Source: Macrostomum hystrix (lineage: Eukaryota; Animalia; Platyhelminthes). From it: 64,000 nucleotides of DNA. The notes below the pieces were generated by a model that had not been told where the DNA came from, made no database searches, and saw only the letters and a program-made list of their open reading frames with translations. The position numbers were made by a program, and so were the translations under genes. Each line of letters starts with the position of its first letter. Position 1 is the stretch's first letter. Where the stretch lies: NCBI GenBank assembly GCA_950097015.1, contig CATNEN010000002.1, forward strand, positions 6,262,001-6,326,000, in the 5' to 3' direction. This document shows positions 3,693 to 63,373 of this stretch, piece after piece.

Positions 3693-6600
3693 ATGGCCAG
3701 GCCTCCGCTGCTGCTGCTGCTGCTTCTCATCCTGACTGCCGTCAGCTTTGGTAAGTATTGCACCTGTGCTCACTGCCCTCACATGCACCTGTGCTCACTG
3801 TCCTCACATGCACCTGTGCTCACTGTCCTCACATGCACCTGTGCTCACTGCCCTCACATGCACCTGTGCTCACTGCCCTCACATGCACCTGTGCTCACTG
3901 CCCTCACATGCACCTGTGCTCACTGTCCTCACATGCACCTGTGCTCACTGCCCTCACATGCACCTGTGCTCACTGTCCTCACATGCACCTGTGCTCACTG
4001 TCCTCACATGCACCTGTGCTCACTGCCCTCACATGCACCTGTGCTCACTGCCCTCACATGCACCTGTGCTCACTGCCCTCACATGCACCTGTGCTCACTG
4101 TCCTCACATGCACCTGTGCTCACTGTCCTCACATGCACCTGTGCTCACTGTCCTCACATGCACCTGTGCTCACTGTCCTCACATGCACCTGTGCTCACTG
4201 TCCTCACATGCACCTGTGCTCACTGTCCTCACATGCACCTGTGCTCACTGCCCTCACATGCACCTGTGCTCACTGCCCTCACATGCTCTGCTGATTGCAG
4301 ACAGCTTTCAGGCAATCAACTGTTTTATTCGGAGCGGGACATCAACAACAGACAATGGGACGACTCAATCCTGTGGGTCAGCCACTGGGTGCTACTCAGT
4401 CACAACCAATGGGGTAAGATTGAATTGCCTGCTGATTTGTTTTTTGTTTTCTGTTTTCCCTTGAAGTTACCTTTTCATAGCGCCCGCCATCAATGGCTCA
4501 TCATTCCAGCAAAGATTCGCGGGCTGCACCAGCAATGGCCAGTGCGGCAGTTCAGGGCCGGACTGCTACGTGTGCAGCACGGACTACTGCAACAGCGTGA
4601 CCCCCTCCTCCATCAGCTGCTTCTACCGCTCAGGATATTCCAGCAGCACCTACAATGGCACTGTGGTCGCCTGCCACTCCGGGGTCTCAGCCTGTAACTC
4701 CTACATGGGATCGGTGAGTTGAGCTGAAAGCTAAACTAAATTAGCTCTTGAAAAGGTGTGCGCGTTTCTGCAGTGCAGTTCACTTTTTTAAGAACTTTTC
4801 TTTAAATGTAACGTGTCGATGGCAATAGTTTAAATTCCCTTTTTTCTACATCTCAATATAAAGAATGTTTTTTTCATTGCGAGCAAAGTCTTTGTTTGTC
4901 AGCTGGTTTGACTGCTAATGCTGCTGTGCACTTCAAGCGGGAGTTGATTTTGAGCTGACAGTCAATGACTTGCTGAACTCGCTCCTCGGGACCTTACTGA
5001 AGGATTGATTGAACAGCTGGGAGCGGCTGGCGAAGCGGAGGTGGTGGGTGAGGAATGAGCCCAGCGCTCAAGGTGAAGAATGGGATGTGGGAATTTCGGT
5101 ATTTACAGCGCTTTTAAAATCAAGACTACAATCAGGACTGCAGTCTGAGTTTTATCTTTTTACAAGGTTAGTTGTCTGTGCCATTGGCAGAACTGGCATT
5201 AAAAATGGAACTTTCTTGACAGTAGATCGATCCGTGCCTTTGACATTGTAGGGATCATCTGGCAGCGTCAGCTATGCCGGCTGTGGCAACATCAGCACCA
5301 ATGACTTTGTTCAGCTGTTCACCTGCAACTCCAGCTTGTGCAACTCCCGAACACCGTCAGCCATCAGCTGCTATGTGGCATCAAGATCTCCTGGTTCCAC
5401 CAACAACGGATCTGCGGTGCCCTGTCCTACTGGAATAAAGACATGCCTTGTCTATGACATCAACGTCTTTTATTCGGTAATTCTCCCACCGGGGTGATTT
5501 AATTCTACAACATGGCTTCTAGCATTTAGAATAAGAAAAAAGTAAGCAAGACACCACATAAGCCTGGAAGTGGCAAGAAGAATGAGCATGGCAGAGGCAA
5601 GAAGATTGAGCATGGCAGAGGCAAGAAGAATGAGCATGGCAGAGGCAAGAAGATTGAGCATGGCAGAGGCAAGAAGAATGAGCATGGCAGAGGCAAGAAG
5701 AATGAGCATGGCAGAAGCAAGAGGAATGAGCATGGCAGAGGCAAGAAGAATGAGCATAGCAGAGGCAAGAAGAATGAGCATAGCAGAGGCAAGAAGAATG
5801 AGCATGGCAGAGGCAAGAAGAATGAGCATGGCAGAGGCAAGAAGAATGAGCATGGCAGAGGCAAGAAGAATGAGCATGGCAGAGGCAAGAAGAATGAGCA
5901 TGGCAGAGGCAAGAAGAATGAGCATGGCAGAGGCAAGAAGAATGAGCATGGCAGAGGCAAGAAGAATGAGCATGGCAGAGGCAAGAAGAATGAGCATGGC
6001 AGAGGCAAGAAGAATGAGCATGGCAGAGGCAAGAAGAATGAGCATGGCAGAGGCAAGAAGAATGAGCATGGCAGAGGCAAGAAGAATGAGCATGGCAGAG
6101 GCAAGAAGAATGAGCATGGCAGAGGCAAGAAGAATGAGCATGGCAGAGGCAAGAAGAATGAGCATGGCAGAGGCAAGAAGAATGAGCATGGCAGAGGCAA
6201 GAAGAATGAGCATGGCAGAGGCAAGAAGAATGAGCATGGCAGAGGCAAGAAGAATGAGCATGGAAGAGGCAAGAAGAATGAGCATGGCAGAGGCAAGAAG
6301 AATGAGCATGGAAGAGGCAAGAAGAATGAACATGGAAGAGGCAAGAAGAATGAACATGGAAGAGGCAAGAAGAATGAGCATGGCAGAGGCAAGAAGAATG
6401 AACATGGAAGAGGCAAGAAGAATGAGTATGGCAGAGGCAAGAAGAATGAGCATGGCAGAGGCAAGAAGAATGAGCATGGCAGAGGCAAGAAGAATGAGCA
6501 TGGCAGAGGCAAGAAGAATGAGCATGGCAGAGGCAAGAAGAATGAGCATGGCAGAGGCAAGAAGAATGAGCATGGCTTCGAGTTAAGAAATAAATTCTGC

Positions 6601-9600
6601 TTTGGGTAGCTATTCGGGTTCAACTGGGAATCATGAAAACCGAATGAAAAAGGAATGACACAGCACCTGAGATCAGTGGCAGAACTCGGTGTGACAGAGC
6701 TCAGATAAAAACAAAATGCAAAGCAAAAGAGTCGTCGATTGCCCCACCCTGTACTTCAGGGTGGCTCCATCTGGTATTCTGCTGGCTGCGGCTCCTGCAA
6801 CTCCACCGCAAATCCATCATGCGTGACCTGCAGCTCTGACCTGTGCAACTCAGCGACTCCTGCAGCCATCAGCTGCTATAGAAGATCACTATATAGTATG
6901 GATGCGATCAGCTATGGACAGCCCGAAACTTGTCAGCCAGGAATTAGCACCTGCTATTCGTTTGTTGCTACCTATAGTGTAAGTTCCTATTATGAATGAG
7001 CTTTTCTGCCTACAGATTCTACATATGAAAAGTCTGTATTAATACTACTCAATATTAGCTCATTTTCATTGTCAATACATTGACAATTTCAGGGTTCTTC
7101 GTACTACTACGGAGGTTGCGGAACCTGCAGCCCAGACACGATTCCGTCATGTCAGACATGCACCAGTAACTACTGCAACACCATGGATACAGGAACTCTT
7201 ACCTGCGCTACAAGAAGCAGCTATAACAAAAACCCTGTCTCCTGTGCCAGAGGAATAAACAGCTGCTACTCACTCACCAAACCCCTTGTGAGCTGCAGCT
7301 TTTACCTGTTGTGAATATCAGCCAGTGTGCTCCCACTGTGATCTGCTCTTGAACTCAGCCTCCAATATCGATCATTCCAGAGAGTGGTGCAGACGTACAG
7401 TTTCAGCAACCTCCTCAGTGGCTGCGGTGTCTGTACGGCGACAACAAGCGCCCTCTACGGCTGCACAATGTGCAACACCAGCAACTGCAACTCCGTGGCC
7501 CCAGTAACAACTGGCAGCCCAGCCAATCCGAGCGGAAACCCGACCAACTCGCCAAGCACAGGTACCGCAGCAGGTGGCTTCAGCTGCTACAATGGCTTCG
7601 GTGAGACTGGCGTCAGCAGCCCACAGACTGTCAGCTGTCCGTCATCGAGCACCTGCTTCGACTACATCATTAGCTACGGAGTGAAGAATGTGAGGCTGAA
7701 AACATTATTTGTTAGAAAAAACTGAAGCTTTGGGGGGCTATTAAACAATCAGTTTGAACTCACGAATGAATAACACGACCCACCAAACTAATATTAGTTT
7801 AACGAATCAGCTGTTTCAGTTGCTTTAATTGTACATTGAAATGAATTAAATAAGCCTGCTTAATCACATTCCCTGCATCCTCTCACCTGCAGTTCTTCTT
7901 CTCAGGCTGCTCAATCACATCAGCTCCACCCTCTCACCTGCAGTTCTACTTCTCAGGCTGCTCAATCACATCAGCTCCATCCTCTCACCTGCAGTTCTCC
8001 TTCTCAGCCTGCTCAATCACATCAGCTCCATCCTCTCACCTGCAGTTCTCCTTCTCAGGCTGCTCAATCACATCAGCTCCACCCTCTCACCTGCAGTTCT
8101 CCTTCTCAGGCTGCTCAATCACATCAGCTCCACCCTCTCACCTGCAGTTCTACTTCTCAGGCTGCTCAATCACATCAGCTCCATCCTCTCACCTGCAGTT
8201 CTCCTTCTCAGCCTGCTCAATCACATCAGCTCCATCCTCTCGCCTGCAGTTCTCCTTCTCAGCCTGCTCAATCACATCAGCTCCATCCTCTCACCTGCAG
8301 TTCTCCTTCTCAGCCTGCTCAATCACATCAGCTCCATCCTCTCACCTGCAGTTCTCCTTCTCAGCCTGCTCAATCACATCAGCTCCACCCTCTCACCTGC
8401 AGTTCTACTTCTCAGGCTGCTCAATCACATCAGCTCCATCCTCTCACCTGCAGTTCTCCTTCTCAGGCTGCTCAATCACATCAGCTCCATCCTCTCACCT
8501 GCAGTTCTACTTCTCAGGCTGCTCAATCACATCAGCTCCACCCTCTCACCTGCAGTTCTCCTTCTCAGCCTGCTCAATCACATCCGCTCCATCCTCTCAC
8601 CTGCAGTTCTACTTCTCAGGCTGCTCAATCACATCAGCTCCACCCTCTCACCTGCAGTTCTCCTTCTCAGCCTGCTCAATCACATCCGCTCCATCCTCTC
8701 ACCTGCAGTTCTACTTCTCAGCCTGCTCAATCACATCCGCTCCATCCTCTCACCTGCAGTTCTACTTCTCAGGCTGCTCAATCACATCAGCTCCATCCTC
8801 TCACCTGCAGTTCTCCTTCTCAGCCTGCTCAATCACATCAGCTCCATCCTCTCACCTGCAGTTCTCCTTCTCAGGCTGCTCAATCACATCAGCTCCACCC
8901 TCTCACCTGCAGTTCTACTTCTCAGGCTGCTCAATCACATCAGCTCCATCCTCTCACCTGCAGTTCTACTTCTCAGCCTGCTCAATCACATCAGCTCCAT
9001 CCTCTCACCTGCAGTTCTACTTCTCAGGCTGCTCAATCACATCAGCTCCATCCTCTCACCTGCAGTTCTACTTCTCAGGCTGCTCAATCACATCAGCTCC
9101 ACCCTCTCACCTGCAGTTCTCCTTCTCAGCCTGCTCAATCACATCAGCTCCACCCTCTCACCTGCAGTTCTACTTCTCAGGCTGCTCAATCACATCAGCT
9201 CCACCCTCTCACCTGCAGTTCTACTTCTCAGGCTGCTCAATCACATCAGCTCCACCCTCTCACCTGCAGTTCTACTTCTCAGGCTGCTCAATCACATCAG
9301 CTCCACCCTCTCACCTGCAGTTCTCCTTCTCAGCCTGCTCAATCACATCAGCTCCACCCTCTCACCTGCAGTTCTACTTCTCAGGCTGCTCAATCACATC
9401 AGCTCCATCCTCTCACCTGCAGTTCTACTTCTCAGCCTGCTCAATCACATTAGCTCCATCCTCTCACCTGCAGTTCTACTTCTCAGGCTGTGGCAGCTGT
9501 CCCTTCAGCAGCGGCACCGACTGTCGCACCTGCAGCTCGAGCTTGTGCAACTCACCTCGGAGAAAGTCCGGCACGAGATGCTACTTCAGCTTCGGCGACA

Positions 9601-9934
9601 GTGCGCAGAGCAAATCCGTGGTCGACTGTCCGTCATCCAGCAGCTGCTTCAGCTACACCTACAATTACGGACTGGCCAAGGTGAGTTCTTGTGCTCAGCC
9701 TCATTCTGCTGTGAGTTCACATGAGTTTGAGCATTGCTGGTGATCTGCGAACCCGCGCGTTTTCAGTTCTTCTTTGCCGGCTGCGGCAACTGCACTTTCG
9801 ACAGCGGCACGACGAACTGCCGCACCTGCTTCACCGACCTCTGCAACTCGGGCTCCGCACTGGGCTGCTCCGCTGCTGCTGCTGCTGCTGCCGCTGCTGT
9901 GGTCTTTGGACTGAACCTCATGAAGCTCTTCTGA
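3693..9934 (+). CDS. Gene A1: secreted/GPI-anchored protein with 7 Cys-rich three-finger (Ly6/uPAR- or DUF753-like) domains, ~565 aa, 9 exons
   Basis: Hand-spliced join(3693-3750,4301-4413,4510-4713,5252-5476,6760-6978,7093-7287,7381-7689,9474-9680,9767-9934). All introns are GT-AG; intron 1 is phase 1 and introns 2-8 are phase 0; 1698 nt with no stop. It begins with the signal peptide MARPPLLLLLLLILTAVSF. The repeated motif is C-[YF]-x(n)-C-x(5-6)-C-[YFL]...GC..C...C..C....CN, with many NxS/T sequons. The C-terminus CNSGSALGCSAAAAAAAAVVFGLNLMKLF resembles a GPI signal. The family assignment is from Cys-pattern recognition, not a database search. Confidence 0.85.
3760..4286. repeat. Intron-1 25-bp minisatellite (CACCTGTGCTCACTGYCCTCACATG)n; copies 17509-18356, 36719-37066, 58297-58572
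   Basis: About 21, 34, 14 and 11 units in A1-A4; fills almost the whole intron. Confidence 0.97.
5571..6576. repeat. Intron-4 24-bp purine-rich minisatellite (GCAAGAAGAATGAGCATGGCAGAG)n; copies 38350-38633, 60357-62253
   Basis: About 42, 12 and 79 units in A1, A3 and A4; A2 has only a partial unit (gaagaatgagcatgg, ~19706-19720). Confidence 0.97.
7855..9488 (+). repeat. Intron-7 51-bp minisatellite spanning the exon-8 splice acceptor; copies 20994-21812, 39666-39895, 63505-64000
   Basis: Unit CTCTCACCTGCAG|TTCTACTTCTCAGGCTGCTCAATCACATCAGCTCCATC. The distance from first to last acceptor is 1581 (31x51) in A1, 765 (15x51) in A2 and 204 (4x51) in A3. Confidence 0.97.
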
Positions 9935-12979: not shown

Positions 12980-13149
12980 AGGTCAGTGCAGATGAAGGAA
13001 AACAAATCAGCACGTAAAATGATTAACAAAGGTATGAGGGTTGTGACATAAATTCGCTGACACTGCAGATATCAAATAAACAAAACAAAGAACAGCTAAT
13101 TGACAAGATTGCACTTCTCAACATAGTCACCCCCAAGCTGCACACATTG

Positions 13150-17441: not shown

Positions 17442-20400
17442 ATGGCCAGGCCTCCGCTGCTGCTGCTGCTGCTTCTCATCCTGACTGCCGTCAGCTTTGG
17501 TAAGTATTGCACCTGTGCTCACTGTCCTCACATGCACCTGTGCTCACTGTCCTCACATGCACCTGTGCTCACTGCCTCACATGCACCTGTGCTCACTGTC
17601 CTCACATGCACCTGTGCTCACTGCCCTCACATGCACCTGTGCTCACTGCCCTCACATGCACCTGTGCTCACTGTCCTCACATGCACCTGTGCTCACTGTC
17701 CTCACATGCACCTGTGCTCACTGTCCTCACATGCACCTGTGCTCACTGCCCTCACATGCACCTGTGCTCACTGCCCTCACATGCACCTGTGCTCACTGCC
17801 CTCACATGCACCTGTGCTCACTGCCCTCACATGCAACTATGCTCACTGCCCTCACATGCAACTATGCTCACTGCCCTCACATGCACCTGTGCTCACTGCC
17901 CTCACATGCACCTGTGCTCACTGCCCTCACATGCACCTGTGCTCACTGTCCTCACATGCACCTGTGCTCACTGTCCTCACATGCACCTGTGCTCACTGCC
18001 CTCACATGCACCTGTGCTCACTGCCCTCACATGCACCTGTGCTCACTGCCCTCACATGCAACTATGCTCACTGCCCTCACATGCAACTATGCTCACTGCC
18101 CTCACATGCACCTGTGCTCACTGCCCTCACATGCACCTGTGCTCACTGCCCTCACATGCACCTGTGCTCACTGCCCTCACATGCAACTGTGCTCACTGCC
18201 CTCACATGCACCTATGCTCACTGCCCTCACATGCTCTGCTGCACCTGTGCTCACTGCCCTCACATGCTCTGCTGCACCTGTGCTCACTGCCCTCACATGC
18301 TCTGCTGCACCTGTGCTCACTGCCCTCACATGCTCTGCTGCACCTGTGCTCACTGCCTCACACACACTCCTGATTGCAGACAGCTGTCAGGCCATCATCT
18401 GCTTCTCACGAAGCTGGACGTATTCAACAGACAACGGGACGGCTCTGGCCTGTGGGTCAGCCACTGCGTGCTACTCAGTTACATCCAATAGGGTGAGGCT
18501 GAAGGACCTTCTTGTTTGTTTTCTGCAATATCCTCTTTATTTATAACTTACGAATCGTATGTCGTGTTGGAACACATATAATATCTAATGTGTCCAGTGT
18601 GTACTTACTATAAGAACTTTATTTATTTATTATTAATTTATTAATTTTAAAGTCACTGAAATATTACTGGAAGTGGCTTGAGAGTTGCTAGCTGGTGTTT
18701 TAATTGGATGCGCAAACGAGACTGTAATTTGGCATACTGTGCATTCATTCCAGCAAAACTTTGCGGGCTGCACCAGCAATGGCCTGTGCGGCACGTATGC
18801 AGGCGAGGACTGCTACGTGTGCAGCACGGACTACTGCAACAGCATGACCCCCTCCTCCATCAGCTGCTTCCACCGCATAGGATCTTCCAGCAGCACCGAC
18901 AATGGAACTGTGGTCGCCTGCCACTCCGGGGTCTCAGCCTGTTACTCCTACATGGGATTCAATGGGATAGATGTGAGTTGAGCTGAGAAGCTAAACTAAA
19001 TTAGCTCTTGAAAAGGTGCGCGCGTTTCTGCAGTGAAATTCGCTTTTTTAAGAACTTTAAAAAAATAATTTCTTTAAATGTAACGTGTTGATGATAATGA
19101 TTTAAATTACCTTTTTTCTATTTCTCAATATGCAGAATGTTTGTTTTCATTGGGAGCAAAGTCTTTGTTTGTCAGCTGATTTGATTGCTAATGTTGCTGT
19201 GTACTTCAAGCGGGAGTTGATTTTGAGCTGACAGTCAATGACTTGCTGAACTCGCTCCTCGGGACCTTACTGAAGGATTGAACAACTGGGAGCGGCTGGC
19301 GAAGCGGAGGTGGTGGGTGAGGAATGAGCCCAGCGCTCAAGGTGAAGAATGGGATGTGGGAATTTCGACCTGTGCCTTTGATATTGTAGCCGCAATCAGG
19401 CAGCCTCAGCTATGCCGGCTGTGGCAACATCAGCACCAATGGCAATGTTCACCCGGTCACCTGCAACTCCAGCCTGTGCAACTCCCAAACACCGTCAGCC
19501 ATCAGCTGCTATGCGGCATCAAGATCTCCTGGTTCCACCAGCAACGGATCTGCGGTGCCCTGCCCTGCTGGATTCAAGACATGCCAGATCTATGAAATCA
19601 ACGCCTATACTTTGGTAATTCTCTCACCGGGGTGATTTAAATCTACAAAATCGCTTCTATTATTTAGAACAAGAAAATAAGTGAGCAAGACACCACATAA
19701 GACTGGAAGAATGAGCATGGCATCGAGTTAAGAAATAAATTCTGCTTTTGGTAACTAATCGGGTCCAACTGGGAATCAGGAAAACCGAATGAAAAAGCAG
19801 ACTAGCACCTGAGATCAGTGGCAGAACTCAGTGTGACAGAGCTCAGATAAAACCAGAATGCAAGCAAATGAGCCGTCGATTGCGCCACTCTGTACTTCAG
19901 GATAGACCCAGCTATTATCGTGCTGACTGCGGCTCCTGCAACTCCACCGCGAATCCATCATGCGTGACCTGCAGCTCTGACCTGTGCAACTTAGCGACTC
20001 CTTCAGCCATCAGCTGCTATAAAAGAGCACTAAGTAGTGGGAGTGCGACCAGCAATGGACAGCCCGAAGCTTGTCAGCATGGAATTAGCACCTGCTATTC
20101 GTTTGCTGCTTTCTATGCCTATCAATTTTTTGTTTATGTAAGTTCCGATTATGAATGAGCTTTTCTGCCTACACATTCCACATGTAGTGCAAAAACTACT
20201 GCATAATACTACTCAATATTAGCTCATTTTCATTGTGAATATATGGACGATTTCAGAGTTTGAACTACTATGGCGGCTGCGGCGCCTGCAGCCCAGACAC
20301 GATTCCGTCATGTCAGACATGCACCGGTGACTACTGCAACACCATGGATACAGGAACTCTCACCTGCGCTATTATTAGAAACGGCTATGGCAATATCCAT

Positions 20401-22258
20401 GTCTCCTGTCCCAGAGGAATAAACAGCTGCTACTCACTCACCAAACCCATTGTGAGAAGCAGCTTTTACCTGTGAATATCAGCCAGGGTGCTCCGCTCTG
20501 ACCTCTGCCTCAAACATCAATCATTCCAGGGATGGCTGACAACCTATTCCTACAACCCCCTCGGTGGCTGCGGTGTCTGCACGCCGACAACAAGCGCCCT
20601 CTACGGCTGCACAATGTGCAACACCAGCAACTGCAACTCTGTGGCCCCAGCAACAACTGGCAGCCCAGCCAATCCGAGCGGAAACCCGACCAACTCGCCA
20701 AGCACAGGTACCGCAGCAGGTGGCTTCAGCTGCTACAATGGCTTCGGTGAGACTGGCGTCAGCAGCCCACAGACTGTCAGCTGTCTGTCAACAAGCACCT
20801 GCTTCGACTACATCTTTAGCTACGGAGTGAAGAATGTGAGAACAGCTTCAGTTATAAGGAACTGGACCTTTAGAGGGCTATCAAACGATCATTTTGAACT
20901 TACGAATGAATAACACGACCCACCAAACTAATATTTGTTTAAAGAATCAGCTGTTTCAATTGGTTTAATTGTACATTAAAATTACTTAAATAAGCCTGCT
21001 CAATCACACCAGCTCCATCCTCTCACCTGCAGTTCTACTTCTCAGCCTGCTCAATCACATCAGCTCCATCCTCTCACCTGCAGTTCTCCTTCTCAGCCTG
21101 CTCAGTCACATCCGCTCCATCCTCTCACCTGCAGTTCTACTTCTCAGCCTGCTCAATCACATCAGCACCATCCACTCACCTGCAGTTCTACTTCTCAGCC
21201 TGCTCAATCACATCAGCTCCATCCTCTCACCTGCAGTTCTCCTTCTCAGCCTGCTCAATCACATCTGCTCCATCCTCTCACCTGCAGTTCTACTTCTCAG
21301 GCTGCTCAATCACATCAGCTCCATCCTCTCACCTGCAGTTCTACTTCTCAGCCTGCTCAATCACATCCGCTCCATCCTCTCACCTGCAGTTCTCCTTCTC
21401 AGCCTGCTCAATCACATCCGCTCCATCCTCTCACCTGCAGTTCTCCTTCTCAGCCTGCTCAATCACATCCGCTCCATCCTCTCACCTGCAGTTCTACTTC
21501 TCAGCCTGCTCAATCACATCAGCTCCATCCTCTCACCTGCAGTTCTCCTTCTCAGCCTGCTCAATCACATCCGCTCCATCCTCTCACCTGCAGTTCTCCT
21601 TCTCAGCCTGCTCAATCACATCCGCTCCATCCTCTCACCTGCAGTTCTACTTCTCAGCCTGCTCAATCACATCAGCTCCATCCTCTCACCTGCAGTTCTA
21701 CTTCTCAGGCTGCTCAATCACATCAGCTCCATCCTCTCACCTGCAGTTCTACTTCTCAGGCTGCTCAATCACATCAGCTCCATCCTCTCACCTGCAGTTC
21801 TACTTCTCAGGCTGTGGCAGCTGTCCCTTCAGCAGCGGCGCCGACTGCCGCACCTGCAGCTCGAGCTTGTGCAACTCACCTCGGAGAAAGTCCGGCACGA
21901 GATGCTACTTCAGCTTCGGTGACAGTGCGCAGAGCAAATCCGTGGTCGACTGTCCGTCATCCAGCAGCTGCTTCAGCTACACCTACAATTACGGACTGGC
22001 CAAGGTGAGTTCTTGTGCTCAGCCTCATTCTGCTGTGAGTTCACATGAGTTTGAGCATTGCTGGTGATCTGCGAACCCGCGCATTTTCAGCTAGTCTTTG
22101 CCGGCTGCGGCAACTGCACTTTCGACAGCGGCACGACGAACTGCCGCACCTGCTTCACCGACCTCTGCAACTCGGGCTCCGCACTGGGCTGCTCCGCTGC
22201 TGCTGCTGCTGCTGCCGCTGCTGTGGTCTTTGGACTGAACCTCATGAAGCTCTTCTGA
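17442..22258 (+). CDS. Gene A2: paralog of A1, ~575 aa, 9 exons
   Basis: join(17442-17499,18380-18492,18754-18972,19390-19614,19901-20137,20257-20451,20530-20835,21798-22004,22091-22258). Same exon phases as A1, open frame of 1728 nt, Cys skeleton conserved. Confidence 0.85.
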
Positions 22259-25937: not shown

Positions 25938-26606
25938 ATGGCCTGCTCTCCGTTGCTGCTGCTTCTCATCGTCGCTTCTGTCAGCTTAGGTATCATAGTT
26001 CACCTGTGCTCACTGTTCATATCCTCCTCACGAGTGTAGGTCAGTTCAATGCGACCGCAATGCTCATTTCAGACTGCAGCCAAGCCATCATCTGCTTCTC
26101 CCGCAATGGAACCTCCCTCATTGACAATGGGACGGCTGTGCCTTGTGTGCCTTGTGCCGATGAGGAAACTGCAGTGCTCTGTGTGCAATATTTGTAACCG
26201 CATGAGTTCTGTTGCAACGACAAAAGCTCCGTAGTAATCACTGAAGCTCTGTTGTAAGTTCAGACGCCAGGTAGCAATCGATTCAAAGCCATTTTTACTT
26301 AGGTTTGCCATAATAATACTTCGCTGCCATTTTCAGTTAAACTATGCGGGCTGTGCCAATAATAGCCAATGTCTGACAGCAGGTGCTCGTTGCTACCTGT
26401 GCGCCACTGACTACTGCAACTCCATGACGCCTCCATCCATCAGCTTTTAAAAAATATTTTTATGGTCTGAAGTAACCATGGTCAAGAATAGGATTCTTAG
26501 GCAGTCTTCCACGTGCGTATGGCATTTAGTGAACTGACAAAACGGCTACAATTCAAAACACAGGCTTCTGCTGGCTGCGGCCCGTGCAACGCTACGGCGA
26601 ATCCTT
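25938..26606 (+). pseudogene. Paralog B1: divergent, decayed/truncated relative of gene A
   Basis: Signal exon 25938-25989 (MACSPLLLLLIVASVSL, GT donor). The exon-2 homolog from 26073 (DCSQAIICFSRNGTSLIDNGTAVPC...) runs into a stop at 26197. The exon-3 homolog 26337-26450 (LNYAGCANNSQCLTAGARCYLCATDYCNSMTPPSISF*) ends in a stop. The exon-5-like start at 26564 (ASAGCGPCNATANP) fuses into the 47-bp array. Confidence 0.65.
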
Positions 26607-29029
26607 GGTCCATGCCAAGGTGTCACCCTGGCTCACAGGTGCTACAATGGGGTGGTCCACGCCAAGGTGTCATCCTGGCTCACAGGTGCTACAATGGGGT
26701 GGTCCATGCCAAGGTGTCACCCTGGCTCACAGGTGCTACAATGGGGTGGTCCATGCCAAGGTGTCATCCTGGCTCACAGGTGCTGCAGTGGGGTGGTCCA
26801 TGCCAGGGTGTCATCCTGGCTCACAGGTGCTGCAATGGGGTGGTCCATGCCAAGGTGTCATCCTGGCTCACAGGTGCTGCAATGGGGTGGTCCATGCCAA
26901 GGTGTCATCCTGGCTCACAGGTGCTGCAGTGGGGTGGTCCATGCCAGGGTGTCATCCTGGCTCACAGGTGCTGCAATGGGGTGGTCCATGCCAAGGTGTC
27001 ATCCTGGCTCACAGGTGCTACAATGGGGTGGTCCATGCCAAGGTGTCATCCTGGCTCACAGGTGCTGCAGTGGGGTGGTCCATGCCAGGGTGTCATCCTG
27101 GCTCACAGGTGCTACAGTGGGGTGGTCCAAGGCAGTCAATACTGTTCGCTTCAATTCAGCCCCATGTCCACGGCTAAAGAGGCTGAATTATATTCAATTT
27201 CGCTGGGCATTCGCCACAGAGTTTTTAGCTCAGTTGCCTTGACACTACTTTAAGCGGTGCAGCGTAAATATGCACGGAAAAGAAGTAAGAAATCAATCCA
27301 AAAAGTAAATAGTAGAGGTAAATAGAACATATTTCAGTAAAGAAATCCCTTTAAGTCCCTTAATCAAAAGAAGTCCCTTAAAGTTGTCAGTTAGTTGGCA
27401 AAGTGTCTGAAACACTCGCTGAAGGCCAGTGCTGGTTGTCATCAACAGGTGCTGGTTTAATATTTTGAAATAAAAATGCAGAAAGCACGATGTTGGCCTC
27501 ATTACGAGGATAAAAAACGAAATCAAAGTTATAGGAGAATGAGAAAGCGAGGAAAATAAAAAACGATTACACAATAATATACTTAATTTGCATTTTAGGT
27601 CGCGCCTACAGTGCATACTCGAACTGCAACACTGGTCTGAGGATTCAGTTGCAGTCTCTCTGTGTCATCTCTATTTTAAAACTCGCAGGTGTTTCTGCTG
27701 CGTCTCTATTGTCTTGCACCATTAAGCCCTCAATTGTGACATTCAAAAGTAGCTTTTCTATTTTTATCCTTGCCTTGCGTCTCTAAAATGCCTAAAAATC
27801 TAAAATTGAAAGTTATCAAAGTTGGCCAAGTTTCCTTTGAACATTCGCTGCAAGGACCACTATAGTAGTCAGTAGTCTACTTTAGTCCTTGATTCGCTAT
27901 AAGCCAGTGCAGGTTTTTTAGCTTATCATTATTAGCGTTAATGTCTCTCTCTGAGCATACTCACTGTGAGATTGTCAAGCCAAGGACCACTATATTACAA
28001 CCACTGGGTCATGATTCCATGAAGCACAGCAAGCTAGAAACGACAGGCTATTGAAACTTTCTGGAAAACAGTCGAGCCCTGCCAAGCCGATTGCAAGCCA
28101 CCATCCTCTTGCCGCGAACTTTTAACTGTAATTTATCCCACAGGTACACACTTTCAATTATCCCACAGGTACAGACTTTCAATTATCCCACAGGTACAGA
28201 CTTTCAATTATCCCACAGGTACACACTTTCATTTATCCCACAGGTACACACTTTCATTCATCCCACAGGTACACACTTTCATTTATCCCACAGGTACACA
28301 CTTTCATTCATCCCACAGGTACACACTTTCATTTATCCCACAGGTACAGACTTTCATTCAGCTCGCACCGGCGGGACACAGTGCCTGTGAGGTATGAGTC
28401 AGTCCAGGCCCACGGGCTTTGGTCTGCGATGCCTCACACCTGCAGCCGTTTTTTGAGCAGGCCTGGCAGGAAGGAGACCTGTACCTTCGGGTGCAGGAAT
28501 CCCTCCAACGCTGTCCCGTCAGCTGACCCATGGGTACACGTCCCGCGAGTGTTCAAGGCTGACCCTAGGGCAGCCGGACAGAATGGGCAACAGCGCTGGA
28601 TGACCCATCCAGGGCCTCCGGCCAAACTGGGTACCTCTAGCCCCGGCTGGAGGGAAAGGTGTCACCCTTTGACCTTAACAGGGTATGTGGCTTGTCCGCA
28701 ATTTTCGTGCACCTGTGCGTGATCAGGTACCTCTGGCTACGGCCCTGAGGGACAGGTGTCACCCTTTGACCTTAACAGGGTTTGCGGCCAGCCCGCAGGC
28801 CTCGGCGCCGGCTCAATGGCACCCTCCAATGTCCCAGTGTTGACCGTGCTGATGGACGCTTGGCCAGGGAGTAGTCTGGTCTCTTACGGTTCCTCCCGGT
28901 GGTCCTGGCATCCCACCCCGGGTTGTAACTTGTCTTTTTTGGCTGCCCCCGCTCAGTTTTGGGATCGCGGCTGAGCGGGTTATTCCTGCCTGTGTCTACA
29001 GGAAGCCCCTCTCTTCATTGCAGCTTTCA

Positions 29030-30577: not shown

Positions 30578-30589
30578 ACCTCTGCCTGC

Positions 30590-36651: not shown

Positions 36652-39600
36652 ATGGCCAGGCCTCCGCTGCTGCTGCTGCTGCTTCTCATCCTGACTGCCG
36701 TCAGCTTTGGTAAGTATTGCACCTGTGCTCACTGCCCTCACATGCACCTGTGCTCACTGCCCTCACATGCACCTGTGCTCACTGCCCTCACATGCACCTG
36801 TGCTCACTGCCCTCACATGCACCTGTGCTCACTGCCCTCACATGCACCTGTGCTCACTGCCCTCACATGCACCTGTGCTCACTGTCCTCACATGCACCTG
36901 TGCTCACTGCCCTCACATGCACCTGTGCTCACTGCCCTCACATGCACCTGTGCTCACTGCCCTCACATGCACATGTGCTCACTGCCCTCACATGCACCTG
37001 TGCTCACTGTCCTCACATGCACCTGTGCTCACTGCCCTCACATGCACCTGTGCTCACTGCCCTCACACACACTGCTGATTGCAGACAACTGTCAGGCAAT
37101 CAACTGTTTTACCGGGAGCGGGACATCAACAACAGACAATGGGACGACTTTGGCATGTGGGTCAGCCACTGGGTGCTACTCAGTCACAACCAGTGGGGTA
37201 AGATTGAATTGTCTGCTGATTTGTTTTTTGTTTTCTGTTTTCCCTTGAAGTTACCTTTTCAAAGCGCCCGCCATCAATGACTCATCATTCCAGCTAAGAT
37301 CTGCGGGCTGCACCAGCAATGGCCAGTGCGGCATTCCAGGCCCGGACTGCTACGTGTGCAGCACGGACTTCTGCAACAGCGTGACCCCCTCCTCCATCAG
37401 CTGCTTCTACCGCTCAGGATCTTCCAGCAGCACCGACAATGGCACTGTGGTCGCCTGCCACTCCGGGGTCTCAGCCTGTTACTCCTACATGGGATCGGTG
37501 AGTTGAGCTGAGAAGCTAAACTAAATTAGCTCTTGAAAAGGTGCGCGCGTTTCTGCAGTGCAGTTCACTTTTTTAAGAACTTTTCTTTAAATGTAACGTG
37601 CCGATGGCAATAATTTAAATTCCCTTTTTTCTATGTCAATTTGAAGAATGTTTGTTTTCATTGGAAGCAAAGTCTTTGTTTGTCAGCTGATTTGATTGCT
37701 AATGCTGCTGTGTACTTCAAGCGGGTGTCGATTTTGAGCTGACAGTCAATGACTTGCTGAACTCGCTCCTCGGGACCTCACTGAAGGATTGATTGAACAG
37801 CTGGGAGCGGCTGGCGAAGCGGAGGTGGTGGGTGAGGAATGAGCCCAGCGCTCAAGGTGAAGAATGGGATGTGGGAATTTTGGTATTTACAGCGCTTTTA
37901 AAATCAAGACTACAATCAGGACTGCAGTCTTAGTTTTATCTTTTTACAAGGTTAGTTGTCTGTGCCATTGGCAGCACTGGCCTTCAAAATAGAACTTTCT
38001 TGACAGTAGATCGACCTGTGCCTTTTGTAGGTATCATCTGGCGGCGGCAGCTATGCCGGCTGTGGCAACATCAGCACCAATGGCAATTTTCAGCTGTTCA
38101 CCTGCAACTCCAGCCTGTGCAACTCCCGAACACCGTCAGCCATCAGCTGCTATGCGGCATCAAGATCTCCTGGTTCCACCGACAACGGATCTGCGGTGCC
38201 CTGTCCTACTGGAATAAAGACATGCCATGTCTATGACTACAACGCCATTTATTCGGTAATTCTCCCACCTGGGTGATTTAATTCTACAACATGGCTTCTA
38301 GCATTTAGAATAAGAAAAAAGTAAGCAAGACACCACATAAGCCTGGAAGTGGCAAGAAGAATGAGCATGGCAGAGGCAAGAAGAATGAGCATGGCAGAGG
38401 CAAGAAGAATGAGCATGGCAGAGGCAAGAAGAATGAGCATGGCAGAGGCAAGAAGAATGAGCATGGCAGAGGCAAGAAGAATGAGCATGGCAGAGGCAAG
38501 AAGAATGAGCATGGCAGAGGCAAGAAGAATGAGCATGGCAGAGGCAAGAAGAATGAGCATGGCAGAGGCAAGAAGAATGAGCATGGCAGAGGCAAGAAGA
38601 ATGAGAATGGCAGAGGCAAGAAGATTGAGCATGGGAAATGAGAAAAACCAAAATGCAAGCAAATGAGCCTTCGATTGCCCCACCCTGTACTTCAGTATAG
38701 CTCCAGCTGGTATGCTGGCTGCGGCTCCTGCAACTCCACCGAGAATCCAACATGCGTGACCTGCAGCTCTGACCTGTGCAACTCAGCGACTCCTTCAGCC
38801 ATCAGCTGCTATAAAAGAAGACTAATATTTGGGAGTGCGATCAGCAATGGACAGCCCGAACCTTGTCAGCCAGGAATTAGTACCTGCTATTCGTTTATTG
38901 CCTACTATATGGTAAGTTCCGATTTTGAATGAGCTTTTCTGCCTACACATTCCACATGTAGTGCAAAAACTACTGCATAATACTACTCAATATTAGCTCA
39001 TTTTCATTGTCAATATATGGACAATTTCAGGGTCAGAATAACTATGGCGGCTGCGGCGCCTGCAGCCCAGACACGATTCCGTCATGTCAGACATGCACCA
39101 GTGACTACTGCAACACCATGGATACAGGAACTCTCACCTGCGCTATAATTGGAAGCAATAACTATAACTCTGTCTCCTGTGCCACAGGAATAAACAGCTG
39201 CTACTCACTCACCAAGCCCATTGTGAGTAGAGCTTTTACCTGTGAATGTCAGCCAGTGTGCTCCGCTGTGATCTGCTCTGACATTTGCCTCTGCAAACAC
39301 CAATTATTCCAGAGACGGATACCTAATGGTTTTGTCGACAACCTCCTCGGTGGCTGCGGTGTCTGTACGGCGACAACAAGCGCCCTCTACGGCTGCACAA
39401 TGTGCAACACCAGCAACTGCAACTCCGGGGCCCCAGCAACAACTGGCAGCGCAGCCAATTCGAGCGGAAACCCAGCAGCAGGTGGCTTCAGCTGCTACAA
39501 TGGCTTCGGTGAGACTGGCGTCAGCAGCCCACAGACTGTCAGCTGTCCGTCATCGAGCACCTGCTTCGACTACATCATTAGCTACGGAGTGAAGAATGTG

Positions 39601-40341
39601 AGGCTGAAAAAATTTTTTGTTTAAAAAAATGAAGCTTTCGAGGGCTATTAAACGATCATTTTGAACTCACCTGCAGTTCTACTTCTCCGCCTGCTCAATC
39701 ACATCAGCTCCATCCTCTCACCTGCAGTTCTACTTCTCAGCCTGCTCAATCACATCAGCTCCATCCTCTCACCTGCAGTTCTACTTCTCAGCCTGCTCAA
39801 TCACATCAGCTCCATCCTCTCACCTGCAGTTCTACTTCTCAGCCTGCTCAATCACATCAGCTCCATCCTCTCACCTGCAGTTCTACTTCTCAGGCTGTGG
39901 CAGCTGTCCCTTCAGCAGCGGCAACAACTGTCGCACCTGCAGCTCGAGCTTGTGCAACTCACCTCGGAGAAAGTCCGGCACGAGATGCTACTTCAGCTTC
40001 GGTGACAGTGCGCAGAGCAAATCCGTGGTCGACTGTCCGTCATCCAGCAGCTGCTTCAGCTACACCTACAATTACGGACTGGCCAAGGTGAGTTCTTGTG
40101 CTCAGCCTCATTCTGCTGTGAGTTCACATGAGTTTGAGTATTGCTGGCGATCTGCGAACCCGCGCATTTTCAGTTCTTCTTTGCCGGCTGCGGCAACTGC
40201 ACTTTCGACAGCGGCACGACGAACTGCCGCACCTGCTTCACCGACCTCTGCAACTCGGGCTCCGCACTGGGCTGCTCCGCTGCTGCTGCTGCTGCTGCCG
40301 CTGCTGTGGTCTTTGGACTGAACTTCATGAAGCTCTTCTGA
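36652..40341 (+). CDS. Gene A3: paralog of A1, ~555 aa, 9 exons, shorter hinge
   Basis: join(36652-36709,37085-37197,37294-37497,38031-38255,38696-38911,39031-39222,39313-39597,39881-40087,40174-40341). Open frame of 1668 nt; the hinge lacks the TNSPSTGT segment. Confidence 0.85.
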
Positions 40342-53119: not shown

Positions 53120-53788
53120 ATGGCCTGCTCTCCGTTGCTGCTGCTTCTCATCGTCGCTGCTGTCAGCTTAGGTATCATGGTTCACCTGTGCTCACTGCTC
53201 ATATCCTCCTCACGAGTGTAGGTCAGTTCAATGCGACCGGAATGCTCATTTCAGACTGCAGCCAAGCCATCATCTGCTTCTCCCGCAATGGAACCTCCCT
53301 CATTGACAATGGGACGGCTGTGCCTTGTGTGCCTTGTGCCGATGGGGAAACTGCAGTGCTCTGTGTGCAATATTTGTAACCGCATGAGTTCTGTTGCAAC
53401 GACAAAAGCTCCGTAGTAATCACTGAAGCTCTGCTGTAAGTTCAGACGCCAGGTAGCAATCGATTCAAAGCCATTTTTACTTAGGTTTGCCATAATAATA
53501 CTTCGCTGCCATTTTCAGTTTCACTATGCGGGCTGTACCAATAATAGCCAATGTCTGACAGCAGGTGCTCGTTGCTACCTGTGCGCCACTGACTACTGCA
53601 ACTCCATGACGCCTCCATCCATCAGCTTTTAAAAAATATTTTTATGGTCTGAAGTAACCATGGTCAAGAATAGGATTCTTAGGCAGTCTTCCACGTGCGT
53701 ATGGCATTTAGTGAACTGACAAAACGGCTACAATTCAAAACACAGGCTTCTGCTGACTGCGGCCCGTGCAACGCTACGGCGAATCCTT
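53120..53788 (+). pseudogene. Paralog B2: copy of B1 in unit 3
   Basis: Signal exon 53120-53171; exon-2 homolog from 53255 with stop at 53379; exon-3 homolog 53519-53632 with stop; exon-5-like start at 53746 (ASADCGPCNATANP) fused to the 47-bp array. Confidence 0.65.
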
Positions 53789-58229: not shown

Positions 58230-61200
58230 ATGGCCAGGCCTCCTCTGCTGCTGCTGCTGCTTCTCATCCTGACTGCCGTCAGCTTTGGTTAGTGCTGCAC
58301 CTGTGCTCACTGCCCTCACATGCACCTGTGCTCACTGCCCTCACATGCACCTGTGCTCACTGCCCTCACATGCACCTGTGCTCACTGCCCTCACATGCAC
58401 CTGTGCTCACTGTCCTCACATGCACCTGTGCTCACTGTCCTCACATGCACCTGTGCTCACTGTCCTCACATGCACCTGTGCTCACTGCCCTCACATGCAC
58501 CTGTGCTCACTGCCCTCACATGCACCTGTGCTCACTGTCCTCACATGCACCTGTGCTCACTGCCCTCACATGCTTTGATGATTGCAGACAGCTGTCAGGC
58601 AATCAACTGTTTTACTCGGAGCGGGACATCAACAACAGACAATGGGACGACTCTGGCATGTGGGTCAGCTACAGCGTGCTTCTCAAGCACATACAATGGG
58701 GTAAGTCTGAAGTTTCTCCTGATTTGTTTTCGACAAATTGTTTTGAAGTGGACCTTGAAGTGAAAGTATCTTTGAATTATTGCGAGTCTCATATTTAACG
58801 CAGAGGAAGTTAAAAAGAAGAAAAAACAATTTCATTGATGCATGGCTACCTAAGCCTCAGGGCAGCTGTCCTTGAGAATAGATATCTCTGAAATACTTTC
58901 CTTGGGCTTCCGTGGTATCCCACTTGTGTCACCAAGCAGTCTATTTTATCTTATGCAGTTTGAAACGCAAAACTAACAGTTTTTCTGAGATTTTTTTGCT
59001 ATTTAAAGGGGCAGTGCTATACCTGTTCCAACTGCACTTTGATAAAAAGTGGACCTCGTTTTCAACTTCTATTTGGCACCTGCTGTAAAATATTTTCTCA
59101 TAGAAATTCTCGGTCTCACATTTCACAATGTTTCACAAGCTCATGTTTTCCTGGTCCAAAAGAGGAAAGAGTGTCTCAACTCAGGCTTGCAGATTTCTTG
59201 CTCATATTTTTCGGCTGAAAAAATATCATTAAAATGATAATATAAGTAGTTATAATAGAAATAGCCAAATGAGCGCATGACTCATCATTCCAGCTAAGAT
59301 TTGCGGGCTGCACCAGCAATGGCCAGTGCGGCAGTTCAGGCCCGGACTGCTACGTGTGCAGCACGGACTACTGCAACAGCGTGACCCCCTCCTCCATCAG
59401 CTGCTTCTACCGCTCAGGATCTTCCAGCAGCACCGACAATGGAACTGTGGTCGCCTGCCACTCCGGGGTCTCAGCCTGTTACTTCTACATGGGATGGGTG
59501 AGTTGAGCTGAGAAGCTAAACTAAATTAGCTCTTGAAAAGGTGTGCGCGTTTCTGCAGTGCAGTTCACTTTTTGAACTTTTTAAAACTTTTATTTAAATG
59601 CAACGTGTCGATAATATTATTTTAAATTAACTTTTTTCTACATCTCAATATAAAGAATGTTTTTTTCATTGGGAGCAAAGTCCTTGTTTGTCAGCTGATT
59701 TAATTGCTAATGCTGCTGTGTACTTCAAGCGAGTGTCGATTTTGAGCTGACAGTCAATGACTTGCTGAACTCGCTCCTCGGGACCTTACTGAAGGATTAA
59801 TTGAACAGCTGGGAGCGGCTGGCGAAGCGGAGGTGGTGGGTGAGGAATGAGCCCAGCGCTCAAGGTGAAGAATGGGATGTGGGAATTTCGGTATTTACAG
59901 CGCTTTTGAAACCAAGACTACAATCAGGACTGCAGTCTTAGTTTTATCTTTTTACAAGGTTAGTTGTCTCTGCCATTGGCAGAACTGGCATTAAAAATAG
60001 AAATTTCTTGACAGTAGATCGACCCGTGCCTTTGACATTGTAGGGATCAACTGGCAGCTATGCCGGCTGTGGCAACATCATCACCTATGAGAAAGTTCAG
60101 CTGTTCACCTGCAACTCCAGCCTGTGCAACTCCCGAACACCGTCAGCCATCAGCTGCTATGTGGCATCAAGATCTCTTGGTTCCACCAACAACGGATCTG
60201 CAGTGCCCTGTCCTACTGGAATAAAGACATGCCATGTCTTCAGTGACACCTACCCCTTCTCTACGGTAATTCTCCCGCCGGGGTGATCTAAATCTACAAC
60301 ATGGCTTCTATCATTTAGAATAAGAAAAAAGTAAGCAAGACACCACATAAGCCTGGAAGAGGCAAGAAGAATGAGCATAGCAGAGGCAAGAAGAATGAGC
60401 ATGGCAGAGGCAAGAAGAATGAGCATGGCAGAGGCAAGAAGAGTGAGCATAGCAGAGGCAAGAAGAATGAGCATAGCAGGGACAAGAAGAATGAGCATGG
60501 CAGGGACAAGAAGAATGAGCATGGCAGAGGCAAGAAGAATGAGCATAGCAGAGGCAAGAAGAATGAGCATGGCAGAGGCAAGAAGAATGAGCATAGCAGA
60601 GGCAAGAAGAATGAGCATAGCAGAGGCAAGAAGAATGAGCATGGCAGAGGCAAGAAGAATGAGCATAGCAGAGGCAAGAAGAATGAGCATAGCAGGGACA
60701 AGAAGAATGAGCATGGCAGGGACAAGAAGAATGAGCATGGCAGAGGCAAGAAGAATGAGCATAGCAGAGGCAAGAAGAATGAGCATAGCAGAGGCAAGAA
60801 GAATGAGCATAGCAGAGGCAAGAAGAATGAGCATAGCAGAGGCAAGAAGAATGAGCATGGCAGAGGCAAGAAGAATGAGCATAGCAGAGGCAAGAAGAAT
60901 GAGCATAGCAGGGACAAGAAGAATGAGCATGGCAGGGACAAGAAGAATGAGCATGGCAGAGGCAAGAAGAATGAGCATAGCAGAGGCAAGAAGAATGAGC
61001 ATAGCAGAGGCAAGAAGAATGAGCATAGCAGAGGCAAGAAGAATGAGCATAGCAGAGGCAAGAAGAATGAGCATGGCAGAGGCAAGAAGAATGAGCATAG
61101 CAGAGGCAAGAAGAATGAGCATAGCAGAGGCAAGAAGAATGAGCATAGCAGAGGCAAGAAGAATGAGCATGGCAGAGGCAAGAAGAATGAGCATAGCAGA

Positions 61201-63373
61201 GGCAAGAAGAATGAGCATAGCAGAGGCAAGAAGAATGAGCATAGCAGAGGCAAGAAGAATGAGCATGGCAGGGACAAGAAGAATGAGCATAGCAGAGGCA
61301 AGAAGAATGAGCATGGCAGAGGCAAGAAGAATGAGCATAGCAGAGGCAAGAAGAATGAGCATAGCAGAGGCAAGAAGAATGAGCATGGCAGAGGCAAGAA
61401 GAATGAGCATAGCAGAGGCAAGAAGAATGAGCATAGCAGGGACAAGAAGAATGAGCATGGCAGGGACAAGAAGAATGAGCATGGCAGAGGCAAGAAGAAT
61501 GAGCATGGCAGGGACAAGAAGAATGAGCATGGCAGGGACAAGAAGAATGAGCATGGCAGGGACAAGAAGAATGAGCATAGCAGAGGCAAGAAGAATGAGC
61601 ATGGCAGAGGCAAGAAGAATGAGCATAGCAGAGGCAAGAAGAATGAGCATAGCAGAGGCAAGAAGAATGAGCATGGCAGGGACAAGAAGAATGAGCATGG
61701 CAGGGACAAGAAGAATGAGCATGGCAGAGGCAAGAAGAATGAGCATAGCAGAGGCAAGAAGAATGAGCATAGCAGAGGCAAGAAGAATGAGCATGGCAGG
61801 GACAAGAAGAATGAGCATGGCAGGGACAAGAAGAATGAGCATGGCAGAGGCAAGAAGAATGAGCATGGCAGGGACAAGAAGAATGAGCATGGAAGAGGCA
61901 AGAAGAATGAGCATGGCAGGGACAAGAAGAATGAGCATGGAAGAGGCAAGAAGAATGAGCATGGCAGAGGCAAGAAGAATGAGCATGGCAGAGGCAAGAA
62001 GAATGAGCATGGCAGAGGCAAGAAGAATGAGCATGGCAGAGGCAAGAAGAATGAGCATGGAAGAGGCAAGAAGAATGAGCATGGCAGAGGCAAGAAGAAT
62101 GAGCATGGCAGAGGCAAGAAGATTGAGCATGGCAGAGGCAAGAAGAATGAGCATGGCAGAGGCAAGAAGATTGAGCATGGCAGAGGCAAGAAGAATGAGC
62201 ATGGCAGAGGCAAGAAGAATGAGCATGGCAGAGGCAAGAAGAATGAGCATGGCTTCGAGTTAAGAAATAAATTCTGCTGTGGGTAACTAATCGGGTTCAA
62301 CTGGGAATCATGAAAACCGAATGAAAAAGGAATGGAACAGCACCTGAGATCAGTGGCAGAACTCGGTGTGACAGAGCTCAGATAAAACCAAAATGCAAAG
62401 CAAATGAGCCGTGGATTGCCCCACTCTTCTTCAGTTCGGCTCCGGCTACTATTCTGCTGGCTGCGGCTCCTGCAACTCCACCGCGAATCCAACATGCGTG
62501 ACCTGCAGCTCTGACCTGTGCAACTCAGCGACTCCTTCAGCCATCAGCTGCTATAGAAGAATACTAAATTTTTGGAGTGCGACCAACAATGGACAGACCG
62601 AAACTTGTCAGCATGGAATTAGCACCTGCTACTCGTTTGTTGCCTCCTATGGTGTAAGTTCCTATTATGAATGAGCTTTTCTGCCTACAGATTCTAAATA
62701 TGAAAAATCTGTATTAATACTACTCAATATTAGCTCATTTTCATTGTCAATACATTGACAATTTCAGGGTTGGTACAACTACTTCGGCGGTTGCGGCGCC
62801 TGCAGCCCAGACACGATTCCGTCATGTCAGACATGCACCGGTGACTACTGCAACACCATGGATACAGGAACTCTCACCTGCGCTACAAGTACAAACGGCA
62901 GCAGTATGAGCAATAACCCTGTCTCCTGTCTCAGGGGATTAAACAGCTGCTACTCACTCACCAAACCCATTGTGAGCTGCAGCTTTTACCTGTTGTCAAT
63001 ATCAGCCAGTGTGCTCCCACTGTGATCTGCTCTTGAACTCAGCCTCCAATATCGATCATTCCAGATAGTGGTGCAGGCGTACAGTTTCAGCAACCTCCTC
63101 GGTGGCTGCGGTGTCTGCACGCCGACAACAAGCGCCCTCTACGGCTGCACAATGTGCAACACCAGCAACTGCAACTCCAGGGCCCCAGCAACAACTGGCA
63201 GCGCAGCCAATCCGAGCGGAAACCCGACCAACTCGCCAAGCACAGGTACCGCAGCAGGTGGCTTCAGCTGCTACTACAGCTTCGGCCAGACTGACTTAAC
63301 CAGCACGCAGAACGTCAGCTGTCCGTCATCGAGCAGCTGCTTCGAGTACAGCTTCAGCTACGGAGTGAAGAAT
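58230..63373 (+). CDS. Gene A4: paralog of A1, exons 1-7 (exons 8-9 lie beyond the window end)
   Basis: join(58230-58287,58588-58700,59294-59497,60044-60265,62435-62653,62768-62971,63065-63373). Intron 1 donor is GTTAGT; frame is open; followed by the intron-7 51-bp array running off the window. Confidence 0.8.
58880..59230 (-). mobile_element. Possible degenerate LINE 3' fragment inside A4 intron 2
   Basis: A4-specific intron sequence. The minus strand reads RCQIEVENEVHFLSKC, like the C-terminal C..E.E.HF...C motif of LINE ORF2. Confidence 0.35.

Follow-up and report, generated by a model that had tools for sequence, protein, structure and literature searches.

Genes encoding LU (Ly6/uPAR, three-finger) domains consist of a signal-peptide exon, closed by a phase 1 intron, and a two-exon set that generally has phase 1 flanks and is split at the loop-2 tip by its internal intron (PMC6600238). 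Where vertebrate genes encode several LU domains, every additional domain comes with such a generic set of two exons (PMC6600238), and in PLAUR, the gene of uPAR, exons 2-3, 4-5 and 6-7 encode domains D1-D3 (PMC2724484). Here we describe a gene array of the flatworm Macrostomum hystrix with a different layout. The stretch analysed, called the window below, comprises 64,000 nucleotides (nt) of assembly GCA_950097015.1 (contig CATNEN010000002.1, positions 6,262,001 to 6,326,000 of the forward strand) and holds four tandem, same-strand copies of a nine-exon gene encoding a predicted signal peptide, seven Cys-rich domains and a predicted tail of the glycosylphosphatidylinositol (GPI) type. An earlier reading of the sequence, referred to as the original prediction, had proposed that the exons are offset from the domains by half a domain and that this offset allows combinatorial diversity by splicing. 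The offset is real, as exons 3-8 of all four copies encode the C-half of one domain followed by the N-half of the next. It is a fixed, inherited and neatly conserved gene layout, while its reading as a source of combinatorial diversity is speculative.

The gene model of copy 1 was established by reading positions 4001-10300, where stop-free stretches were translated and in-frame AG/GT sites listed. On the forward strand, exon 1 (3693-3750, 58 nt) starts with the ATG at 3693, encodes the predicted signal peptide with its Leu-rich N-terminus and ends at a gtaagt donor followed by a phase 1 intron; its sequence is identical to that of copies 2 and 3. Exon 2 (4301-4413, 113 nt, entered in phase 1 and left in phase 0) encodes the N-half of domain 1 (D1). 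The following six exons are all flanked by phase 0 introns on both sides (0-0): exon 3 (4510-4713, 204 nt) encodes the D1 C-half and D2 N-half, exon 4 (5252-5476, 225 nt) the D2 C-half and D3 N-half, exon 5 (6760-6978, 219 nt) the D3 C-half and D4 N-half, exon 6 (7093-7287, 195 nt) the D4 C-half and D5 N-half, exon 7 (7381-7689, 309 nt) the D5 C-half, a Pro/Ser/Thr linker and the D6 N-half, and exon 8 (9474-9680, 207 nt) the D6 C-half and D7 N-half. Exon 9 (9767-9934, 168 nt including the stop) encodes the D7 C-half, and its end reads as small residues followed by a hydrophobic tail, as in a GPI-type signal. Splice sites are GT-AG throughout, with intron 1 in phase 1 and introns 2-8 in phase 0. 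In each of exons 3-8, ..GC(G)xC..CxxC..CN passes directly into ..(I/L)(S/T)C[YF]..C..C[YF]S.., leaving no inter-domain intron.

N-halves are thus found in exons 2-8 (n = 7) and C-halves in exons 3-9 (n = 7), giving seven domains and not the eight counted originally. The start of exon 3 also had to be corrected, to 4510, where the acceptor 'ttccag' is kept in 4 of 4 copies and coincides with the junction of the Macrostomum lignano ortholog. The AG of 'catag' at 4480 looks stronger as an exon 3 acceptor but is out of frame and was rejected. This out-of-frame AG with its strong polypyrimidine tract, 29 nt upstream of the exon 3 acceptor, is seen in copies 1 and 3 (4479-4510 and 37263-37294), and its use would lead to a premature stop. 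Within the exon 4 C-half (5252-5347 in copy 1), Cys5 and Cys6 are jointly missing in all four copies. Such a joint loss is what a disulfide pair would lead one to expect and, judged from the sequence, agrees with the three-finger core having lost one of its disulfides.

The same layout recurs along the window on the forward strand. Copy 2 (17442..22258) and copy 3 (36652..40341) have nine exons each, exons 3-8 measuring 219, 225, 237, 195, 306 and 207 nt in copy 2 and 204, 225, 216, 192, 285 and 207 nt in copy 3. Copy 4 (58230..63373) has its exons 1-7 in the window, with exons 3-7 of 204, 222, 219, 204 and 309 nt, and exons 8 and 9 just past the window end (L006:21-227 and 314-481). All four copies have intron 1 in phase 1 and introns 2-8 in phase 0, and their internal exons of 192-309 nt, the shortest being exon 6 of copy 3, are all multiples of 3. 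The lengths and the phase 0 of the mid-domain introns originally claimed therefore hold for every copy.

Sequence searches returned few relatives of the domain. Pfam scans gave nothing significant for the window exons, taken exon by exon (UPAR_LY6, Toxin_TOLIP, QVR and UPAR_LY6_2 not matched), or for the stop-free reading of copy 3 from exon 6 through the intron into exon 7, in which 30 residues encoded by intron 6 add six cysteines; spliced M. lignano relatives were also without a match to an LU model. With exon 8 scored inside a long stop-free frame, a word-indexed search of proteins gave no matches, and a PDB sequence search with the exon profile gave only sub-threshold mambalgin matches, with the two halves in permuted order. 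When the profile, an alignment of 21 exon units, was searched against 1.84 billion representatives, 23 matches were obtained, and their looked-up sources were M. lignano proteins (with 2, 4 and 7 domains) and Meloidogyne proteins. Match P0014 (E 1.7e-6) is a canonical multi-LU protein, which scored against Pfam UPAR_LY6 with an E of 3.5e-5 and 24.6 bits (cut-off 24.8). P0021, an RCC1-repeat protein, was a false positive, and P0028 was dismissed as an integrase fragment from a chimeric cluster. In the profile alignment, the framework of 8 Cys per domain with an invariant CN end fits the LU pattern of 8-10 Cys ending in C-x(4-5)-C-N, and departs from it by a CxxC where CC is usual and by the missing N-terminal CxxC.

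To place this framework on a fold, we used an AlphaFold model of the two-domain M. lignano protein P0009, with the window exons as alignment rows; its mean predicted local distance difference test score (pLDDT) is 69, and it represents a relative and not the window's own spliced product. Foldseek matched the model to LU-type folds only, with uPAR first (E 3.4e-4), short three-finger toxins at template modelling (TM) scores up to 0.83, and further matches to Prod1, PSCA, GPIHBP1, CD59 and TGF-beta-family receptor ectodomains. In VIA-align, whole toxins cover model residues 22-82 and 87-151, with Z of 7-8 (up to 8.2) and a root-mean-square deviation (rmsd) of 1.3-2.4 Å. Since whole toxins align to units of N-half plus C-half, these are the folding units and the exons are truly offset by half a domain. 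On the predicted fold, the domain is of the Ly6/uPAR type, in a divergent form.

We also considered whether the register is wrong and the true repeat is a non-LU Cys-rich unit encoded by the exon, for example TNFR-Cys, so that exons and domains coincide. Such a unit would agree with the absent Pfam LU match and with the automatic UniProt label of the M. lignano proteins, 'TNFR-Cys domain-containing protein'. However, with an N-half alone in exon 2 and a C-half alone in exon 9, this register would leave orphan halves at both ends, the toxins align to the other register, and no Pfam family, thus no TNFR model, was matched at E <= 1 by the scanned M. lignano proteins, making this alternative exceedingly unlikely. 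The label itself was rejected, as Pfam TNFR is unmatched by P0001 and P0024 and the fold matches of the model are all LU-type.

When homologous introns were mapped onto the model through the M. lignano protein P0005 in the alignment used for modelling, they fell at or within 1-2 residues of the loop-2 tips (residues 54-55 and 119-120). Because this is the position stated for the internal intron of LU genes (PMC6600238), the mid-domain intron is the ancestral, canonical LU loop-2 intron. The mid-domain intron as such was therefore already known, and the novelty lies in the lack of inter-domain introns and in the phase 0 of the loop-2 intron. PLAUR/uPAR, LYPD3/C4.4A, CD177 and TEX101 resemble the flatworm genes in their tandem three-finger domains and in the signal peptide and GPI-type tail, which in the flatworm are predicted from the sequence, and vertebrate multi-LU genes further share the phase 1 signal-peptide intron, one loop-2-tip intron per domain (PMC6600238) and clustering of the genes, uPAR also being the best Foldseek match of the model. 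On the other hand, vertebrate genes have a two-exon set per domain and mostly phase 1 inter-domain introns (PMC6600238, PMC2724484), which the flatworm genes lack, and the flatworm domain differs from the vertebrate one in its phase 0 loop-2 intron, its 8 Cys, the CxxC in place of CC and the lacking Pfam UPAR_LY6 match. A two-exon set of its own for each domain, with flanking introns of the same phase, was found in none of the four copies, the paralogs or the M. lignano genes, and none of them has an intron between domains. The contrast to PLAUR drawn by the original prediction is thus borne out.

The layout extends to relatives with other domain numbers. The M. lignano ortholog P0034 has 7 domains and 9 exons, with internal exons of 237/243/201/213/375/216 nt in phase 0, and the window exons are ~25-66% identical to it in a MAFFT alignment that stacked every exon fragment onto one repeat. 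The same half-offset is seen in the M. lignano proteins P0005 (2 domains) and P0003 (4 domains) and in a 3-domain paralog of the same genome (L005, contig C1). Domain number among distant paralogs is thus 2, 3, 4 or 7, in line with the variable number looked for originally, whereas it is fixed in recent copies and orthologs: the four tandem copies, two further A-type paralogs and the M. lignano orthologs all have 9 exons and 7 domains. Outside flatworms, Meloidogyne graminicola P0006 (JABEBT010000140.1) has 7 matched repeats in the same half-offset with phase 1 introns. It resembles the flatworm genes, as do Meloidogyne P0007 and P0012, in the GCGxC..CxxC..CN / C..C..CY repeat, the half-offset exons and the missing inter-domain intron, but the phase 1 introns lie 2-3 residues before GCG (3-12 in the flatworm) and the proteins are rich in Lys and Asn. 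The same divergent LU-like repeat is carried by the root-knot nematode proteins P0006, P0007, P0011 and P0012. Since the looked-up sources of the 23 profile matches are Macrostomum and Meloidogyne only, the distribution of the repeat looks strikingly patchy.

Taken together, we consider it probable that the four copies are tandem paralogs of a divergent Ly6/uPAR-type Macrostomum family that grew by domain duplication, each copy most likely being spliced constitutively. In the predicted product, a signal peptide would precede five membrane-distal LU-like domains, which a Pro/Ser/Thr stalk would connect to two membrane-proximal ones ahead of a GPI-type tail. Every domain would have retained the single LU-typical intron at the loop-2 tip in phase 0, with none between domains. 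Since the only intron of a domain lies at loop 2 and none lies between domains, an internal exon begins with the rear half of one domain and ends with the front half of its successor. The array may have grown by intragenic tandem duplication of a segment of N-half, intron and C-half, with breakpoints in the coding sequence; with breakpoints placed there, the fused exon of C-half and N-half would arise automatically. In vertebrates, the duplicated segment would instead have been a set of two exons with introns on either side. Half-domain similarities within copy 1 are highest for the C-halves of exons 8 and 9 (67%) and the N-halves of exons 7 and 8 (45%), and therefore D6 and D7 are sister domains shifted by one exon. 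As read from the sequence, this appears to be exactly the pattern predicted by duplication of a domain unit with coding breakpoints. Furthermore, the chance that seven introns share their phase, if independent, is ~0.004, and the shared phase goes back to the common descent of the duplicated units and not to seven independent events.

Exon borders inside the structural repeat are also found in ankyrin, leucine-rich repeat (LRR) and spectrin-type genes, whose arrays grow by duplication. Compared with these, the flatworm domain is a disulfide-rich globular unit with one conserved ancestral intron, and its offset is exact and uniform.

Alternatively, domain number could be set in the germline by turnover of exon units, through unequal crossing-over in repeat-rich loop-2 introns, and not by duplication of whole domains. 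Members with 2, 3, 4 and 7 domains in an identical layout would agree with this, as would long minisatellites in introns 1, 4 and 7 and a B-type paralog at C2:8.228 Mb of the same genome (L004:66-2488), in which exon 4 is exactly missing and exon 3 leads straight to exon 5 over a ~630-nt intron with phase 0 retained. However, this B-type copy has lost several cysteines and looks degenerate, recent tandem copies show no change in exon number, and the clearest recent duplication, that of D6/D7, is shifted by one exon and fits a domain unit. Turnover of exon units is thus possible, although we find it somewhat doubtful. With growth by domain duplication, the symmetrical 0-0 exons mean that rare germline loss or gain of an exon would be tolerated, which fits the 2-, 3-, 4- and 7-domain relatives and the paralog lacking exon 4. 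That an internal exon can be lost or gained in frame, with whole, chimeric domains remaining, follows logically from the 0-0 exons, as originally claimed.

Further paralogs of the same genome lie at C2:6.57 Mb, where an A-type copy has a frame break in exon 6, and at C2:8.21-8.23 Mb, where three copies comprise one truncated by a deletion, one with an expanded exon 7 linker and the B-type copy. In the C2:8.21-8.22 Mb paralogs, the Pro/Ser/Thr linker of exon 7 is tandemly expanded in frame (L003:4400-5272 and L002:8056-8520), and in one of them a deletion fuses the exon 7 linker to the exon 9 tail in a different frame.

Minisatellites occupy several introns of the window. In copy 1, the intron 7 minisatellite (7855..9473, forward strand) has a 51-nt unit that contains the acceptor and the first 17 nt of exon 8, so that every unit is a potential in-frame phase 0 acceptor, and related arrays lie at 20994-21797 and 39677-39880. 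It is open in all three frames, and its openness by itself is therefore uninformative. Long minisatellites are also found in intron 1 (3751-4300), intron 4 (5560-6575) and the spacer between copies (13100-15400), and their length differs strongly among copies, intron 4 measuring 1283, 286, 440 and 2169 nt.

Variation among the four copies is concentrated in the loops. At the exon edges, which encode loop 2, 71% of the alignment columns are variable, compared with 51% for loop 1 and 22% for the core (Fisher p = 6e-16 for edges and 1e-6 for loop 1), in agreement with the claim that a hypervariable loop is formed from two exon ends. The ratio of nonsynonymous to synonymous substitution rates (dN/dS) is about 1 in the two variable parts (edges 0.8-1.55, loop 1 0.9-2.1), and the core has values of 0.7-0.9. 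In-frame indels adjoin donor sites, intron flanks are more divergent than the exon core, and exons 8 and 9 are almost invariant between copies; the scaffold and the two membrane-proximal domains have hardly changed. The pattern fits weak or diversifying constraint on the loops together with homogenisation of the scaffold, and is no proof of positive selection. The loops may be the ligand-facing parts, weakly constrained or diversifying, and the family would then have diversified by germline gene duplication and loop divergence and not by splicing. In snake toxins, exons show accelerated change in loop segments. Snake three-finger toxins resemble the flatworm domains in their fold (Z ~8, rmsd 1.3-2.4 Å), in the loop-2 intron and in paralog differences residing mainly in loops, but they are single-domain, secreted proteins without a GPI tail, and nothing suggests that the flatworm proteins are toxins.

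The original prediction had gone further, proposing that the half-offset 0-0 exons are used somatically, with skipping, repetition and inter-copy splicing producing chimeric domains and new loop-2 combinations. Every internal exon is indeed symmetrical, starting with a C-half and ending with an N-half, loop 2 is the most variable part, the four copies stand in tandem on one strand, and intron 7 bears an array of in-frame acceptors. Moreover, human PLAUR produces the isoforms del3, del5, del6, del4+5 and del5+6, all its internal exons being in-frame cassettes, and del5+6 joins the exon of the D2 N-half to the exon of the D3 C-half (PMC2724484), the same kind of chimeric domain as proposed for the flatworm. 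The difference is that a single-exon skip in PLAUR leaves half a domain, while in the flatworm it would leave whole domains, and that the isoforms of PLAUR are observed, with none seen for the flatworm gene among database proteins. Since PLAUR already skips internal exons in frame, the principle is not unique to the half-offset layout; the arithmetic of in-frame skipping holds, but its importance was overstated.

Several features argue against somatic use. Exon number is constant in the A-type copies and the M. lignano orthologs, and the database proteins comprise full-length or truncated forms only, with no exon-skipped forms among them. Every copy comes with a conserved upstream region, a signal-peptide exon and AATAAA poly(A) signals (~630 nt after the stop) of its own, and the splice sites are ordinary GT-AG. 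In addition, 2-domain members share the layout with a single internal exon, so that skipping would bring no combinatorial gain. We therefore regard such somatic use of the exons as very unlikely. The bolder idea that 0-0 exons, repeat-filled loop-2 introns and the gene array form a diversification device, making chimeric three-finger receptors cell by cell as a counterpart of Dscam, is very unlikely indeed. Constitutive splicing of germline-duplicated copies remains our preferred explanation.

Some points weigh against this explanation. Assignment to the LU family draws on a predicted paralog fold of medium confidence, the Cys pattern and the gene structure, and neither the window exons nor the spliced M. 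lignano relatives match a Pfam LU model. Constitutive splicing is suggested by gene models and annotated M. lignano proteins. Regarding growth of the array, the similarity matrix of exons 3-6 does not separate duplication of a domain unit from that of an exon unit. Finally, the synonymous rate (dS) is 4-6 times higher at exon edges than in the core, and gene conversion of the core or uncertainty in aligning indels may shape the pattern of variation as much as selection on loops.

Other elements of the window lie between the gene copies. On the forward strand, a B-type fragment at 26071..26620 contains an exon 2-like part, an exon 3-like piece with a terminal stop and an exon 5-like start running into a minisatellite, and is likely a pseudogene; a second B-type fragment of the same kind lies at 53263..53630. 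Between copies 2 and 3 there is a GC-rich, apparently intact retrotransposon of the type without long terminal repeats (28381-34294), with open reading frame (ORF) 1 at 29018-30577 and ORF2 at 30590-34294 (1234 amino acids), the latter putatively encoding a product similar to the endonuclease and reverse transcriptase of long interspersed nuclear elements (LINEs). A second GC-rich block is found at 42-46 kb.

In conclusion, these genes represent a divergent LU/three-finger family that escapes the scanned Pfam models and reaches seven domains in a single protein. The multi-domain genes appear to have arisen by another route than the vertebrate uPAR-type genes, retaining the loop-2 intron and carrying the domain junctions as in-exon scars of duplication, and they illustrate clearly how the exon-domain register of a repeat array is decided by where a domain has its sole intron. 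This illustration should help in annotating flatworm and nematode genes and in tracing the evolution of the LU domain. If true, splicing-based diversity would be important. The layout of the family would make loss or gain of an exon harmless to the structure, and the range of domain numbers among its members may be explained in this way.

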